From Orbicella franksi (lineage: Eukaryota): a DNA stretch of 64,000 nt. A model generated the notes under the pieces. That model was not told where the DNA came from. It searched no databases and saw nothing but the letters and a program-made list of their open reading frames with translations. The stretch covers positions 19,530,001-19,594,000 of the forward strand of contig OZ116699.1 in the NCBI GenBank assembly GCA_964199315.1, given 5' to 3'. A program made the translations under genes and the position numbers. Positions 30,693-38,566 of this stretch are shown here, one piece after another. Numbering within the stretch: the first letter of the stretch is position 1; the number at the start of each line of letters is the position of its first letter.

Positions 30693-32771
30693 CGACAACT
30701 GATCTGTCAGAAAAAGGTCTTATACATACAAGAAAATTAGACTACCTTACTGTTATTTTTTCAAAAACAGGACCGGTAAGATGTGTAGAGACGGAGTAAG
30801 GGACCAGTTTGGTCACGTTATTTACGATTCTTCGATTCTTCGTGCCTCTCTCCGAGAGCGCACGAGTTGCGTGAAAGCAAGGATGCAAGACGGAGCACGA
30901 AAAAGTGAAAGAGGAAAGTCCGGGAAAAAGAGGAAAACGCCGAAAAGCAATGTTACAGTTTTCTTTCCTTGCTCGCTCTCTTTTGTCTCTATTTCTGTCT
31001 TGTTTTTGGTTTTTACTGTCTCATTCCCAAACGTTCTCGCGCTTTCAGATGAGAAGCGGCCATCCCTCAGTCTCTTCCTTTTTTTGTGGCAGATCCAAGA
31101 AGGCCACAATCATCTCGGGAAAACGGTCTTGATACTGATAAAACCAAATTCTTCCTTGTGGTGCATCAAAGACTGCGAAGGACCATTTTGAATTTGATCG
31201 AATTCTGTAAAAATATTTGTTAGGCAGAAAGTACTGCGATTTGTTTTCTACTGCCGACAAACGTACCAAGAATTTGTCACCAGAATCAATTGTTAAGATG
31301 CCTTAAAGAAAATTAAAACTAATATATTTATTTAATAATGTATTTTAAATACGTCTCAATGATAATATATACCTGGTATTGTATTACCCCGTTAACAATA
31401 AACAGATTTTGTCGCAGAAGCAGTTTTTTTCGTCAGTTTATACTCTCTATGCCCCCAACCTCCCGTCTTCGCTTCGAAAAAATAGTGGGCCTCAAAGGGT
31501 CAGCGTTAATTTGGAATAGCTCGTGGATCGTACCGAAAACAAAAAGATGTATTGGACACAGGGACGTAGCCAAGAGCCGCTGGTAGAGAGCTTATCACTG
31601 GCCGAGATTTATTTTGAAGATGCACAGGCCAGAAAAGCCAGCTGAGCTTGAAAATGAGCTTCATTCCTGGCACAATACTTTTATTACAATTACGCATTTG
31701 AATGATATTAGAAAACATATTTGATCGCAAGATCAGGAAACCACAGTGTACGCTCAGTTGTTGTACAAACTCACCAGTGAGACGCAGACTTTCTCGTGTC
31801 ATGGTACGGCGGTATTAATAAGGCGCATGGAGTGTACGGGCTGTGTGTTGACTACGAGCTGAGGCCCTATTTTCGCTTACATTTTTTGTCCCGAGTACTA
31901 TGAAGAAATAATAAGGTGAGCGGAATGAGTCGAGCGCGACTAGGGCCGGGGGACTACTGCATTGCACATGACTGCCATCTGCCATTTTCTTTCCGCCCAA
32001 TAGCGTAATAAGTTCACAGACTAAGAATAAAAATGGTCAGAAAAGTTACGCGACAATGTTTTAACGTTAACAAGTACTCCAATACCTCGGTATACCAAAT
32101 AATTGATTTACTACAGACTGAAGTTACTTCTTAAGGATTACTTTTAAATTGATATAATTTAACATATATTTAAGCTCTAAGTTCTTGCATTCAGTTTTTT
32201 TATGTTGAAATAAATATCAAAAAGTGTTTGGAGACGTCATCATAATCTAAACCCTTAACAAAACCGATGTCATGAACCAAATTAGTTTATATAACTTGAT
32301 GAAAACCCAACTAACAAAAAGATACGGTGACGATATTCAACTCTCGTTTGGTCTAACTGCATGTTTGAATTCGTCTTTTCTGCACGACTTAGAGGCTAAC
32401 TGTAACTACGTTCCCTCCGAGAAATACGGAATCTGACGACCGAGGCTGTCTTACAGAAAGATTATAAATGGACCCAGAACGGCCCTAACTTAGCAGTTTG
32501 TAAATTCGTTAGTTTGTAAATTTGTTAGTTAATCTCTGAATGATCAACACCGACTGCAACGATTAGTAAAATAATTACCGGATCTAAATTCGATCAGTTA
32601 CGAGAAGCGTCTTAACAGAGGTTTACTGCGACTGGAAAAAATGGTGAACAACATTAGGAAACAAAATGTCCTGTATGACCCCTACATGGGGTTACTAAAG
32701 AATATGAACTAGAAGGCTCCATTCTAATTTATGAAAAGCCAAAAGCCTTCCGATTTACTACATCTTTTTAT

Positions 32772-35700
32772 TCACTCGTCACTCTGGATAGACTGGATAC
32801 ACTCTTCATATCCCTGCCAGGTGGGACTGTTCCAGCGAACAGGACTTTGGAGATTGACACCAGTCGGAAATCTTGCGGTGGGTATCACGGACAATAGCCT
32901 AACGTTGGGTAGCCAAGGCAACTGATAGGGAGGACTGGTGGCCACGAAAGGCGCGAACTGTGCCAGTGGGCCACCAATCACAGAGCTTGCACCTGGATAG
33001 TTGAAAAAGTTGTTCCACAACACTTGAGGCGATAGGTTAGTGTCAACGCTGCAATCAGAAATAAACGTGTCGGAATGTTACTGCTAAAATCATGTAGCTT
33101 GTTGGCAAATAACGTGTGACACGAAATTTTTGCGGGTTCTAATTTTTGCCATGTTTACGGTTTTTTTCCACGACCTGAACAAAATGTTCCCGCAACCGTT
33201 TTCTCCGCTGGCAAAATTATGCATACAAAAATCACATGTAGAATCTTTTTCGTGACATTTAGTTAAAACTTTTCTTTCTACAGAGGCAACACAATGAAAT
33301 TAGAATCAAAACGTTTAGAAATAAAACGATAAAATTGCCCTCGGTAAACTACAGGTGTGATAATGCATCAACTGGTACTATAGTTATTGCTGATCCATTA
33401 CAGGAGCAACCAGTCACTAGGACAAGATGTAATTGTAATACTGAGTGATACCCGTTTACCGTGTTTTACATCTTTACATGTTCTTTCACTTATGATATCG
33501 ACTGCATGTAGTCAGATAAAAAAATAAAGTTTCCATTCCAATTAAACGCGACTTCCTGAAAATCGTCAAGATTAATGCCCAGCAAGAAAAGCCAGCCTTA
33601 AACAAGCGTAAAAATAAGTCCCCGAGAAATAAAAAAAAAATCACCCATCCGCAAAATTCCCGCGAAAACATAGTGCAACGGGGTAGTTTAAGGCGTTTCC
33701 TCTGAAGAGGCGGATAACATTATGTCTACCAATCAGATACGCTAAATTCACGCAAGGACGCGCGCCATTGAAGAATCTTAGGGCGATCCTCTTGTCGCAA
33801 AGTGGCCGACAATTGGAAATTTAAGTGAAAAACGAAGACTGTTTCTTTTGAGCATAGAACAAAGAAATAATCTTTCCCTTTTTTAACGTGCTTTATCGCT
33901 TTCTTTGGATTGTCTGGTTTTGTTTGTTCGACTTCCATTATTTTAAAATTTGTTCCAACTTTTATCTCCTCACTCGTAACCGATTTGTGAACTGTGACTT
34001 TTGATAACGTAAAACGTTAACAGTACCACACTTCTTTAATACCTTAGAGGTTGTTCCAGCTGGGTTCCACTCAAAGATAAAACTAAACTCTCCTCTAATT
34101 GGTTCACTGAGGACGTAGCGTCTTCCGTCGGTTTCCATCGTCGTCGGTTTTGCCGGAGAGTCTTCGGGCATTCACCTGGCGTGTCGTTCCGGAGACGTCT
34201 TCGGGCATTGGCAAACCAATTCTTAAGCTACAGCAACAATAAAAAAGGTTGTAGATTTTCGAATTATATTGCCATCAACTGGCACTCTGAAAGTGGTGGC
34301 GATCGCCTACCAGAGTTGCTCGTTTAAATTAGCTGATCACATACACAACAGGGTCTGATTGTAGTGTTTTCACTGGGAAAATTCTAGCATGGTGTGCAGT
34401 GATAGCTTACGGGAGGTGATCGGACTACACATACCCAGGAGCTGACACACCGTAACTGAGAAAAGACTGCTGGAACTTCTCGACTCGTTGGAAATAAAAA
34501 CTCTGTGTTTGTTCCGTGTCACTAAAGGCGGGAAAATCCACGTAACACCCGAAAAAAACAAATGAAAGGTCTTGCTATGAGGATACTGGTATCAGCAAGA
34601 TGGAAACAAAAATAGTAGGGGACGTCACCACGACGGTCCATCATACCCTTGGGGCGAGCTCGGTATACTCAATTTGCATTGGTAATTAATACCCTGGGGA
34701 TTAAGCAAATGACAGTATAAAGGAATTTACTCGTGTTCCACTACATCACTCTACTCGAGGCCGCAAAATTGAAGCAGTTGGTGACCTACCCTCCCACCCA
34801 ACGAGAAGTCGGGCTTGATCTAGCTGTCCACTTCTATTTTCGCCTGGTCTTGGGCTTGTCCCAGACCAGATCAATTCCCCATAACTTATTACCATGTCAT
34901 GAATAATAATACCCAGAGTAGAATATTACACTATTCTTTCCCACTTAACTTTTCTGAAAGAGAAGATTACCTGACCCAAAGTAAGTCCGTGTTGCTCTGC
35001 CAACATCAATCTCTCTGTTGCATTTGGGTATGGATTGTCAATGTGCTCCTTAAACCACGCCTGTAATGCATTGCAGGTTTCCTTGGGGATTCCTCTCTTT
35101 TTGCGAATACCGGAAGGGCAAATGCTTCGCGGTGGCATAAATCTACAAAGAATTAACCCGTCACACTTGTTCAAGGAAATTTGCTTAGTGACGGAAATTT
35201 CCAGATCTAGCATAACCTAAGGTACGGGTCGTGAAAGAGATAAGTCTTTGAATCGACCCAGTCTCGTTGAAGGGTACCCGCGCGCCGCGCGCGGGGAGAG
35301 ATACCAGCATGACTTGTTCCCATATCTCTCGCGAAATACTAAAGAGACTAGGGACGAGTCCGGGCTGCGAACGCTGACAGAAAGATCTGAAGAGCGTTTT
35401 CCATCTCTGTTCTATAAACGCCCCTAAAAAAAAGAGTTTGCTGCTTGTATCATTGGTCAAGAAAGTATAACAATCAGAGTATTAGTATGTGTGTTTATAT
35501 AAGTTTTGGCCGATCGGAATTTGCGTTGTTGTATAAAATGTAAATGTGGGAGGAAAAGGCGTAAAATTCTTTCTAATGTAAACATTTTTTCAGTTGTTTG
35601 TTTACCGTTTTTGACACTTTATCATTGTCATCTTGGTCTGTGACCTGACCTTATGCCGTCTCTGCGTGTCGCGGACGAGACTTTTTTCGTTGTCCATACC

Positions 35701-37108
35701 ACCGGGTCAATCTCGAGGGACTAGATTTATTTTTACTTCTAGGTCAAAAGAAAGACAATTCAAACATAAGATCTTATCAACCAGTTGTGTAATCAGGATG
35801 TGTGTGAAATCCACAATTGTTGAAGAAGTCTTGAAGACGGTATACCGGCAAAGTCAGAGAGGATGTACGTGTCCGGCGATATCAAACAAGTCAGCATACT
35901 CTGCCTAAACGTGCTGCTTTTTTGTCGCCAAGCGCAATCAAAAGTTATTTATATGGTTGATAATTTGTTGCAAAAAGACCTCGAATTCATAGCCGATTTG
36001 GCTATTTACCGATTTTTATAAACTTTGAATTGATGTAATTAGTACAAATCCAAAGTGCCGAAGGATCTGTCAGTTTCGTCCGTGTTTTTCTCCACCATAT
36101 CAACTAGTCATATCGCTTAATTTTTGGAAAATGTTTCTGCAAAAATAGTCATGCTGAAAGTCTTGCCTCAGAAATAGAACAGTTTGTGTGTGAGTCCTTC
36201 CCCAGAGAAAAAACCCAACTGCGACGAATTTCATCGAAAAATGTACAAGCAATCTGATACTTAAACTCAAAAAATATGTTACTCTTCACTTTGGAGATGT
36301 AACATGCACCAAACAACTCTTGCTGTATGACTCTAAACGCTTAGCGACGATGAATGAATAAAGCAGACTCAATAAAACTCTAATGAAACGGACAAGGCGT
36401 GTGAGCGATTAAAACTTACAAAAAATGCCTGAACCACTTTTGCCTTATTTCTACAGTGAACGAGAAAGAATTTTACGGGCCAAGAACGTTCTGATTTAGG
36501 GAAATAACAGCGTCAATAGAAGAGTTGATCGCATTTTTACTGACACTCAATTACATCAAGATTTTACCCATGATAAGTGCGGTTACTATTTGAGAACAGT
36601 ACGTAACCAAATATTTTCCAACAGACCTTTGTCTCAGGCGATGCCGCTGCACTGGAGTCCTAGCTTTAGCTTCATAAACATGAGCCTGATCCCACATCAC
36701 AATAAGATCTTCACCGTTAGAGAATTTGCCTTCCTACATGACGAATTAAATTTTTAGAAATGAGCAATTTCCAGAGAAACGAACATCTTCGGGCGATAAT
36801 TGAAACATGCATACCAGAAACCTGTATTTCAGTGAAATGGGAACTACATGTGAAACGTTAATCAATCATGGTTTTACCTCTATAAGTTTGTAAACCGTTT
36901 GCACGTCTCTATTGTGCCAGGCAAGCGCAATTTTTGCGCGAGTAATCTCTTCATTATCCTGGTATGCTCGAGTGTGAGGGAGACGAACAAGTAGACTCTC
37001 GACTTCAGCGAATTTGTTGCAACGAATAAGACTGGTCACCCGCGTGCTAACAGCTGTAACATTGTCCAGAATGGATAAAAGTCGCTCCCGATTCCGGGCA
37101 CGCTTCAT
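32772..37108 (-). CDS. Homeobox protein with N-terminal SIX-type domain and TALE-type homeodomain (ANHX-like)
   Basis: Exons (minus) 36878-37108, 36627-36733, 34971-35142, 34043-34227, 32772-33048; phases consistent; about 323 aa. SIX-domain-like LVRLP...NEEITRAKIALAWH...VYKLIE...MWDQAH...TPVQRHRLRQRF. Homeodomain KKRGIPKETCNALQAWFKEHIDNPYPNATERLMLAEQHGLTLGQLKNWFANARRRLR. Exon structure after the homeodomain is less certain. Confidence 0.85.
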
Positions 37109-37323
37109 GATTTGAAAGCAGCTGTTTCGTAGATTTAGTAAATATTGACTACTTTGCTGACACGATAGGTATTGGCGCCAGCCGGTCTACCATTTTGTGC
37201 AATAAGCCTAAAGTTGGGCCGTGAGAATGACGACTTTCTATTGGCTGACTTGTAAAACCCAGTTTGCATGGTGTCCATCATACCGTTGATTCATTTCTGC
37301 CCAGGGGCTACTCGCCTAATTTT

Positions 37324-37487
37324 GGGTGCGTTCCTTTGGGGTGATCTGGTCAGGATCATTCGTATCATGCATCAAAGGAGCAGAGGGTTCCGCGACCAGA
37401 GTGGATTCGTCGGTTCTTTTGATAAACCATGATCAGAATGATCTTGGTTTTCTGATCCTGATCCAGAGCACCCCAAAGGAACGCACC
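37324..37487. mobile_element. Fold-back MITE-like element upstream of the homeobox gene
   Basis: GGTGCGTTCCTTTGGGGTGATCTGG ... CCAGAGCACCCCAAAGGAACGCACC inverted arms with imperfect inner symmetry. Confidence 0.7.
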
Positions 37488-37886
37488 TTTCGTCTTCGTC
37501 TGGCCATGCATAAACGATTTTGTCTTCTTTTGAAGGCAAAAATACCTTTTCTACCCGGCGTTGTGAGAATTTGCTTCTGGGTTGCTCGTTTAAGTGAGTT
37601 TTGTTCCCGCAAAATTTTCTTTTTGACATTTCCCCAAACCGAGAACCCTCCCTCTCTCCTCCGCCACCATGACTTTTCTAATGGCTCAACCCTAAAAAGT
37701 AGTTTGCTCCCTACAACATGCCCCCTCCTTCAGGCCAGAATGCGCACATTATATCCATTTTGAGACGAAGATGTTGAAAATCTATCGATATTGTCCTGAC
37801 ATTCCCCATCAACTGAGAATTCCCTTTGCCCGAGTCTCTGCCTGGCGGACAGAGGTTTTCGTGTCTCAGTGACTCCAACAAGCCTC

Positions 37887-37983
37887 GAGGGAGGGAGGGA
37901 GGGGGGAGGTAGGTAGGTAGGGAGGGAGGGAGGGAGGGAGGGAGGGAGGGAGGGAGGGAGGGAGGGAGGGAGGGAGGGAGGGA
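37887..37983. repeat. (GGGA)n microsatellite
   Basis: Long GGGA array with a few GGTA units; source of the spurious PPSL ORFs. Confidence 0.95.
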
Positions 37984-38566
37984 AGCGTAAAGTAAGAAAA
38001 GTCAAACACAAAAGCGAAACCAATCTTTACAGGCGTTGTGGCATGGGACACATGCAAACATTAACGCGGCCATGATACAGCTAGCTAGCAGCGGCAAACT
38101 AGGAATTTCAAACATTCTATAATTGATGTTACTTTGATGAAAACGTACGCCACTACCTTATGGCCAAAACCACTACACTTCTGTAATCACATGACACCGG
38201 TCACGTGTTGTTCGTCTTTACACGAAGTTTTCTATACAAGCAAACAGCATTGATGATCAGCATTTGATTATATTTATTTATTTATGATAGAGAGAAATAC
38301 AACCACTGGCAATTTTTGAGCCATTATAAATATAACTGTGATTAGTATCTTCCTAGGAAATAAATTACAATGCTGACGACTGAAGAAAACTACACGAGTG
38401 CCACACCCAGCAATTTCCTGAAATAATTTCGATAATTACATAGCTCGACTTTTCTTGCAACTTGCAACGAAAAACTTGCAGGTTTCAAGCAAACAAACGT
38501 TTGTTGTGTTGCAAGCGGCAAGAAAAAAAATGCTTCGCGTAACATGTCCTTAACACACTGTCTCTG

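Follow-up and report, generated by a model that had tools for sequence, protein, structure and literature searches.

Gene model, domains and constraint at the locus

The stretch of DNA analysed here, called the window below, is 64,000 nucleotides long and comes from the coral Orbicella franksi (positions 19,530,001 to 19,594,000 of contig OZ116699.1, assembly GCA_964199315.1). On its minus strand, at 37108-32772, it carries a five-exon homeobox gene in which a SIX-type region is followed directly by a homeodomain. We call the gene ANHX-like after the anomalous homeobox gene ANHX (human LOC647589, UniProt E9PGG2), which was named in 2016. Six-frame translation of 32700-37200 found five open reading frame (ORF) segments, and the joined exons form an open coding sequence (CDS) of 972 nt that encodes 323 amino acids (aa) and ends with a stop codon. 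All four introns have the form gt...ag, with a pyrimidine-rich stretch before each ag. Rfam and tRNA scans of the window gave no matches.

What kind of protein does the gene encode? Note that proteins of the SINE class combine a SIX domain with a 60-residue homeodomain that has lysine at position 50 (K50), while the homeodomain of the TALE (three amino acid loop extension) class has 63 residues. The window protein runs ...TPVQRHRLRQRFMPPRSICPSG-IRKKRGIPKETCNALQAWFKEHIDNPYP...LKNWFANARRRLR. Its SIX-like stretches are LP...NEEITRAKIALAWH...VYKLIE, W.QAH and TPVQRHRLRQRF; the linker contains MPPRSICPSG, the homeodomain arm is IRKKRGIPK, and LKNWFANARRRLR is present as well. Exon 3 alone contains, in this order, the SIX-type linker FMPPRSICPSG, the N-terminal arm of the homeodomain, helix 1, the 7-residue loop between W and PYP (W-FKEHIDN-PYP) and helix 2. 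The whole homeodomain has 63 residues, and in WFANARRRL of helix 3 position 50 is alanine (A50). An earlier note on this DNA, made from the letters alone, had described a SIX-type region ahead of a homeodomain with A50 and a MEIS/TGIF-like arm; all its features are found at this place on the minus strand, and A50 and the arm are both read in the spliced product.

The domain searches agree with this description for most of the protein. For single exons, Pfam gives a partial SIX1_SD match under the cut-off in exon 1 (E=1.1e-4, 23.1 bits, profile positions 10-65 of 113) and a Homeobox_KN match over the cut-off in exon 3 (E=2e-8, 34.4 bits, profile positions 1-29), the tail of which (profile positions 31-40) lies in exon 4. 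The full-length coral orthologues P0003 and P0011 reach 53.5 and 49.9 bits for SIX1_SD (cut-off 27.4) and 51 and 48 bits for Homeobox_KN (cut-off 24), so the HMMER comparison that had been proposed for these two profiles comes out positive in the orthologues and is partial for exon 1 of the window alone. A hidden Markov model (HMM) was also trained on the SIX domains of the four canonical SIX proteins from this genome; it picks up residues 36-120 of the spliced window product with 37 bits. For the first one to two helices of the SIX domain, no match was found in Pfam (profile positions 1-10), in the phmmer search of exon 1 against PDB sequences or with the own-genome SIX HMM (positions 1-37); in that phmmer search SIX1 was not matched at all, and the N-terminal similarity to the SIX domain is visible to profiles only. 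Of the domains that accompany TALE homeodomains (MEIS, PBC or IRO box), Pfam finds none upstream, SIX1_SD being its only hit N-terminal to the homeodomain.

Similarly, the two halves of the protein point to different known structures. Against PDB, exon 3 aligns ungapped through the loop to the homeodomains of PKNOX1, TGIF1, MEIS1/2 and PBX1/Exd, and no SIX structure appears at E<=1. The AlphaFold2 model of residues 1-200 of P0003 (predicted local distance difference test, pLDDT, 81.6) shows a helical bundle and then a three-helix homeodomain. The top PDB match of the model is SIX1 in the SIX1-EYA2 crystal 4egc, and the top matches of its homeodomain alone are PKNOX1, Exd/PBX, MEIS1 and TGIF1.

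Is the gene kept by selection? Orthologues were retrieved by phmmer with exon 1 over the whole library and by two word-indexed searches. They are present in at least 7 coral species, in some as ORFs orthologous to exon 1. Full-length annotated proteins come from Desmophyllum pertusum (P0003), Oculina patagonica (P0014), Stylophora pistillata (P0016), and Montipora foliosa and M. capricornis (P0011, P0019); the protein of Porites evermanni (P0017) is partial, and P0012 is a more distant exon-1 ORF on a contig of only 1.3 kb, which adds no homeodomain. The window protein is 71% identical to that of Oculina and 68% to that of Desmophyllum. The gene model is colinear with the annotated orthologues and with the uninterrupted CDS of a transcript-like contig, with no indel at the four exon junctions. 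In exon 5 the motif PQV.WN..(F)NYPG.S.V(I)G...QFA...PYQLPWLPNV is kept among robust corals (alignment with P0003, P0014, P0015 and P0016).

The entire gene can also be aligned to L032, a genomic contig from a closer relative among the corals. This contig retains the five exons, every splice dinucleotide and the stop codon, with equal exon lengths except for one in-frame difference of 6 nt in exon 5; the CDS is 92.3% identical to that of the window and the introns are 78-80% identical. The ratio of nonsynonymous to synonymous substitution rates (dN/dS, Nei-Gojobori) between the two is 0.23 overall, 0.045 in the homeodomain, 0.34 in the SIX domain and 0.27 in the C-terminal part. Because the model is colinear with the coral orthologues and the locus of the related coral is intact, the gene model is not a product of chance, and as judged from these alignments the coral gene is functional and under constraint.

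There is also transcript evidence from a pocilloporid relative. The pocilloporid Logan contig L008 (1867 nt) contains an uninterrupted CDS of 307 aa. When placed on the intron-containing Stylophora locus it falls into five blocks, which follow one another without a gap in the contig but have introns between them in the genome. A spliced mRNA linking the SIX-domain exons to the homeodomain exons thus exists in the gene family.

Note that the exon 1 phmmer search over the whole library returned only coral relatives, with no SIX or ANHX protein significant, so this search leaves the relations of the family unsettled. One further Desmophyllum protein, P0020 (603 aa), has an Exportin-T-like N-terminus joined to an ANHX-like part that starts at exon 2, with 88% identity to P0003; the alternatives are a recent second copy in Desmophyllum and a merged gene model.

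Table 1. Exons of the ANHX-like gene and other features seen around it, in window positions.
Feature	Position	Strand	Size	Content
Exon 1	36878..37108	(-)	231 nt, aa 1-77	ORF and splice site; start codon, divergent N-terminal helix, first half of the SIX domain (...LPHTRAYQDNEEITRAKIALAWHNRDVQTVYKLIE); donor gt, phase 0
Exon 2	36627..36733	(-)	107 nt, aa 78-113 in part	Second half of the SIX domain (EGKFSNGEDLIVMWDQAHVYEAKARTPVQRHRLRQR); donor phase 2, within an Arg codon
Exon 3	34971..35142	(-)	172 nt, aa 113-170	Linker and homeodomain start; donor at homeodomain position 44/45, phase 0
Exon 4	34043..34227	(-)	185 nt, aa 171-232 in part	Homeodomain helix 3 (LKNWFANARRRLRND), then basic/acidic tail
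Exon 5	32772..33048	(-)	277 nt including stop codon, aa 232-323	C-terminal region
Homeodomain coding part	~35111 to ~34180	(-)	63 residues	Start in exon 3, end in exon 4
RNA contigs at the 3' end	32300-33708			Depth ~18 in two poly(A) runs; unbroken over the 3' untranslated region, exon 5 and 140-660 nt of intron 4
RNA contigs in intron 3	34806-34858			One poly(A) run, 168-490x, loose ends
Dispersed repeat	37318-37490	both	~170 bp	Palindromic, resembling a miniature inverted-repeat transposable element; ~210 bp upstream of the start codon; at least 576 candidate genome copies (first-look search)
RNA depth spike	37346-37500			128-243x
Low-complexity ORFs	37730-38057	(-)		PSLPPSLP-repeat ORFs adjoining the upstream repeat

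Some features around the gene concern RNA rather than its coding part. The depth of the poly(A) contigs over the 3' end declines toward the 5' end of the gene; these contigs could be unspliced RNA, 3'-biased RNA or carried-over genomic DNA. The depth spike upstream of the gene, together with loose read ends at 37318 and 37349, is due to the dispersed repeat. The spike in intron 3 is likely to reflect another repeat or a piece of some abundant RNA transcribed at a different place in the genome.

Age of the family and affinity of its homeodomain

How old is this gene family? A profile search retrieved proteins with SIX1_SD and Homeobox_KN from three abalones, Haliotis rubra, H. asinina and H. 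cracherodii. In the protein of H. rubra the linker reads RYRIRQRFLPPEHICPNG, the loop has 7 residues (W-LLDHPTD-PYP) and helix 3 contains WFANARRRLR. Its gene has an intron after ...LLE in phase 0, which matches coral intron 1 (after L-I/L-E) in exact position and phase, and another in the Arg codon before FLPP (AG|A, phase 2), which matches coral intron 2 (RQR|F) exactly. Introns 1 and 2 are found in Stylophora as well, and they are absent in the canonical SIX genes. The linker pattern R-x-R-x-R...P-P...I-C-P-x-G is invariant in corals and Haliotis. Since the Haliotis genes agree with the coral genes in architecture, in the linker motif and in two introns at identical phase, the sequences support an origin of the coral/mollusc family before the cnidarian-bilaterian split. 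The AlphaFold cluster entries A0A6P8JBE0 ('six1-like', 34% identity) and A0A7E6F7B6 (31%) are, from their similarity, likely to be further members. The earlier note had proposed an ancient pre-bilaterian lineage combining SIX and TALE features and linked to ANHX. The age is borne out by the coral and Haliotis genes, while orthology with ANHX is not demonstrated by them. The third coral intron (homeodomain 44/45, phase 0) is absent in Haliotis and coincides with an intron of coral PBX, a coincidence to which we give little weight.

The genome of Orbicella franksi has a second, more divergent ANHX-like paralogue, on the minus strand of contig C10 (about 14299771-14302552; loci L005, L007 and L027). 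It has the same three intron positions as the window gene, introns 1 and 2 among them, and its homeodomain intron has a GC donor. Its linker is FLPPENICPNG, its W...PYP loop has 6 residues, helix 3 reads WFANTRRRMR, and the stop codon comes soon past the homeodomain. Thus the loop is not of one length in the family: it has 7 residues in robust corals and Haliotis, 6 in this paralogue, and 5 in Montipora and Porites. The three-residue extension of TALE type, as had been claimed, is present in the window gene, where the alignment to TALE homeodomains is ungapped, but it does not hold for the family as a whole. Because Haliotis and most corals have 7 residues, deletion is the simplest reading of the shorter loops. 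WFAN in helix 3 is found in every member of the family.

Is the homeodomain closer to TALE or to SIX? The same genome carries IRX, TGIF, MEIS, PKNOX and PBX genes on the TALE side. As for SIX, four canonical genes lie within ~117 kb on contig C15 (7306023-7422999; loci L001-L004 and L011-L014), one above the usual set of Six1/2, Six3/6 and Six4/5. Each of the four has the SIX domain and the homeodomain in a single open frame, with a loop of 4 residues (W-4-PYP), WFKN (K50) and a homeodomain of 60 residues. A Homeobox_KN match was considered as a test for TALE membership and was rejected, for the canonical SIX genes pass it as well. For this reason only the start of the match and the ungapped alignment through the loop discriminate: the match starts at profile position 1-2 in the window gene and the TALE genes, and at 6-8 in the SIX genes.

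The pairwise identity of the window homeodomain is 46% to IRX, 40% to MEIS, 39% to SIX, 41% to Haliotis and 40% to human ANHX, and such identities do not decide between TALE and SIX. Profiles give a clearer separation. The window homeodomain scores 72 bits with a profile of five coral TALE homeodomains, 45.5 bits with one of four SIX homeodomains and 33.6 bits with one of nine others. In the reverse direction, the profile of the family gives 64-79 bits for TALE homeodomains, 45-56 bits for SIX and 24-36 bits for others. A maximum likelihood (ML) tree was built from a small sample of 30 homeodomains from this genome and relatives, on 58 columns with the loop columns dropped. In it ANTP-, LIM- and PRD-type homeodomains are set apart from a single group that unites SIX and TALE with the family and human ANHX (99/97), and the family is placed with IRX, MEIS, PKNOX and TGIF (91/89). 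In the approximately unbiased (AU) test, a clade of the family with SIX is not rejected (p 0.125), and neither is a clade of the family with human ANHX (p 0.226). The homeodomain phylogeny that had been proposed as a check therefore has a mixed outcome: the tree and the profiles favour TALE, while descent with SIX is left standing by the AU test. From these comparisons the homeodomain may be called TALE-like; TALE ancestry by descent is not proven.

Relation to ANHX and origin of the gene

Is the coral/mollusc family related to mammalian ANHX? ANHX has been described only from placental mammals, where it was put into the class 'Other' (Zhong & Holland 2011), and it was later listed in the 'SIX class' next to SIX1 and SIX6 (Paps & Holland 2018), so a SIX relationship of ANHX is not new. 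The human homeodomain has NWFANYRRRQR, and its spacing from helix 1 to the loop exceeds that of SIX (Zhong & Holland 2011, additional file 1). Our search of one literature library found no description of non-mammalian ANHX-like genes or of a SIX-domain gene with a TALE loop.

Several comparisons connect the two. The top structural match of the Desmophyllum protein is the chordate 'Anomalous homeobox' Atlas cluster (TM score 0.51), 96% of whose members have SIX1_SD and 99% Homeobox_KN. For the N-terminal halves of the Montipora and Oculina proteins, the top language-model match is the 'ANHX protein' cluster (0.95 and 0.93), ahead of every SIX cluster. The human ANHX homeodomain scores 45.5 bits with the profile of the family, higher than with TALE (40.2) or SIX (35.8). 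A third word-indexed homologue search with Haliotis added returned only more Haliotis proteins and no vertebrate ANHX. On balance, the coral/mollusc family and ANHX are probably orthologous or sister families, which suggests that mammalian ANHX belongs to a family older than bilaterians.

We therefore read the gene in the window as a functional coral transcription-factor gene of an old ANHX-like family, separate from Six1/2, Six3/6 and Six4/5 and likely sharing a common origin with ANHX, and give this reading a probability of about 0.62. The scenario is that an ancestor had a SIX domain together with a long-loop homeodomain, that the family would have kept this combination by descent, and that the loop would later have been shortened several times (7 to 6 to 5). 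The encoded protein leads from the SIX domain through the linker R-x-R-Q-R-F-x-P-P-x-S-I-C-P-S-G directly into a 63-residue homeodomain with a MEIS/TGIF-like arm and an IRX-like helix 3.

A number of points weigh against this reading. The first group concerns expression. The earlier note had looked to RNA for the exon junctions, and none of the four was seen in Orbicella franksi in four runs over 32300-37500; the RNA contigs over the gene are of low depth and cover introns as well as exons, and a sampled run of raw poly(A) reads had zero reads on the gene. The missing junctions give no support, yet they are no refutation, because contigs drop rare forms and the RNA was from colonies only. In addition, what is said below on the DNA motif of the coral protein, its partners and its expression is inferred. 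The second group concerns the link with ANHX. Atlas scores are leads, not alignments. In Foldseek against Swiss-Prot human ANHX comes 21st (E 1e-7, 23% identity), and SIX1-6 rank above it (E ~2e-9, 28% identity). In the ML tree human ANHX sits on a long branch and does not join the family, in a comparison made with the human homeodomain only (60 residues), whose loop and helix-2 spacing differ. The human homeodomain has 61 residues against 63 in the coral and has no PYP, with NTNPS instead. The clade of the family with SIX that the AU test leaves standing belongs here as well.

Could the gene be simply a divergent member of the SINE class? It would then be an early SIX duplicate whose loop gained one to three residues, whose K50 was replaced by alanine and whose homeodomain converged on TALE, and ANHX would be a separate, later SIX derivative. 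This may account for the clearly SIX-like character of the SIX domain and the linker, for the Foldseek ranking and the result of the AU test, and for the labile loop length; what is more, SIX homeodomains themselves score intermediate toward TALE and match Homeobox_KN. However, the likeness to TALE goes beyond the loop, since the arm is RKKRGIPK, helix 3 is WFANARRRL as in IRX, and the gap between the profiles is 26 bits. The tree still places the family with TALE when the loop columns are left out. Three independent queries all had ANHX as their nearest Atlas cluster, and human ANHX has A50 and a lengthened loop too. We consider this explanation unlikely, though it fares best among the rivals.

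Another explanation is a true chimera, a term also used in the earlier note: by domain shuffling, a TALE homeobox of the IRX or MEIS kind would have come to lie behind a SIX gene's SIX domain in the cnidarian-bilaterian ancestor. It would agree with the scores and the grouping of the homeodomain with TALE, and with the homeodomain intron at 44/45 in phase 0, which is also in coral PBX and in none of the canonical SIX genes; this intron may be a gain in corals, because it is absent from Haliotis. But the linker F-x-P-P-R-S-I-C-P-S-G, which corresponds to F-P-L-P-R-T-I-W-D-G of SIX, is in the same exon as helices 1-2, with no intron at the junction. Exon shuffling at a present intron was rejected for the same reason: no intron parts a 'SIX' from a 'TALE' segment, both being in exon 3. 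As SIX, TALE and the family make one supported group in the tree, plain descent is allowed, and a common origin with the SIX homeodomain is compatible with the AU test. An ancient recombination within an exon is a possible variant. A recent fusion of two genes is disfavoured as a poorer explanation than descent, because the SIX-like linker and the TALE-like arm and helices 1-2 share exon 3, and the chimera as a whole seems to us improbable. The fusion claimed in the earlier note is therefore not supported.

The last explanation, a pseudogene or a chance string of ORFs joined by gene predictors, could appeal to the lack of spliced reads in this species, where RNA contigs span introns and exons alike, but it was rejected as very improbable on the dN/dS values given above and on the conservation of all eight splice sites where introns are only 78-80% identical, to which the intact ORF, the spliced pocilloporid contig and the orthologues in other corals may be added.

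Given descent from an old ANHX-like family, what did the ancestor of the SINE class look like? Homeobox classes have been treated as separate since early animal evolution. A tentative view, to which we would not give even odds, is that the SINE class is an offshoot of TALE-type genes, and that the ancestor with a SIX domain had a 63-residue, non-K50 homeodomain, a state kept by the ANHX-like family in corals, molluscs and probably mammals. Canonical SIX genes would then have lost three loop residues and gained K50, and the shortening of the loop within the family (7 to 6 to 5) would be the same process. If this is true, ANHX is one of the oldest animal homeobox families and not a mammalian oddity.

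What the analysis shows is a constrained coral/mollusc family, with conserved introns of its own, in which a SIX domain stands together with a homeodomain that is TALE-like and of TALE length. With it the origin of the ANHX type is likely moved before the cnidarian-bilaterian split, and the family offers a natural intermediate when one asks about the relation between the homeodomains of SINE and TALE. In public annotation these genes are called 'SIX1/3/6-like', which hides them from homeobox surveys that use only the homeodomain.

Is there any indication of function? In homeodomains, helix 3 makes its base contacts at positions 47, 50, 51 and 53-55; IRX/MKX proteins have A50 with R53-R55, a pattern near that of MEIS/TGIF, and TCAGGTTTC is a SIX-type DNA site. 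Because of A50 and R53-R55 in helix 3, the homeodomain would be expected to read an ACA-containing core like that of IRX/MEIS rather than the K50-dependent MEF3 site of SIX. The conserved part of the SIX domain and the linker would support DNA binding and partner docking. The window linker is the counterpart of a stretch of SIX1 for which contact with the minor groove has been proposed, with the equivalent of SIX1 R110 present and W122 replaced by Cys. The predicted factor would combine SIX-type partner surfaces with a non-SIX DNA specificity. According to the passage of PMC7063838 that cites this work, binding of SIX1 to EYA needs helix 1 of the SIX domain and is abolished by V17E. The EYA-type cofactor surface proposed in the earlier note falls on the first one to two helices, where EYA is contacted in SIX1 and where the window protein has no sequence match; since the equivalent of SIX1 helix 1 has no detectable similarity, EYA binding is not claimed here. 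As for human ANHX, it is a germ-cell factor with which more oogonia-like cells are obtained (PMC11850904). By analogy one may speculate that expression of the coral gene would be restricted, possibly to the germ line or the embryo, which would explain the silence in colony RNA.

Comparison with SIX, TALE and ANHX genes

Compared with canonical SIX genes, the window gene has the same SIX domain fold, with similar sequence from about helix 3 on (helix 2 or 3). The linker Y/H-R-x-R-x-R/K-F-P-x-P-R-S/T-I, which includes the equivalent of SIX1 R110, is common to both, and so are the PYP motif and TGLT..QV.NWF.N.R in the homeodomain. The differences lie in the loop (7 residues against 4), in position 50 (A50 against K50) and in the arm, which is basic in the window gene and reads ETSYCFKEKSR in SIX; Cys stands where SIX1 has W122. 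In addition, the SIX domain and the homeodomain of the window gene are interrupted by three introns, while those of the canonical coral genes have none.

Compared with TALE genes, the window gene has the loop extension of three residues, the arm RKKRGIPK, which is to be compared with KKRGIFPK of coral MEIS, and a helix 3 with the same WFANARRRL as coral IRX. It differs in what lies upstream, since a SIX domain sits there and no MEIS, PBC or IRO domain is present.

For ANHX, identity to the coral protein is low, about 40% in the homeodomain and about 23% overall. In human ANHX, going by the annotation of its cluster, and in the coral orthologues, an N-terminal SIX1_SD lies directly before an atypical homeodomain that is read by Pfam as Homeobox_KN, and the two proteins are colinear (ANHX residues 20-204 against residues 17-200 of the coral orthologue). 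With the window gene ANHX shares Ala50 (WFAN), RRR in helix 3 and a loop longer than that of SIX.

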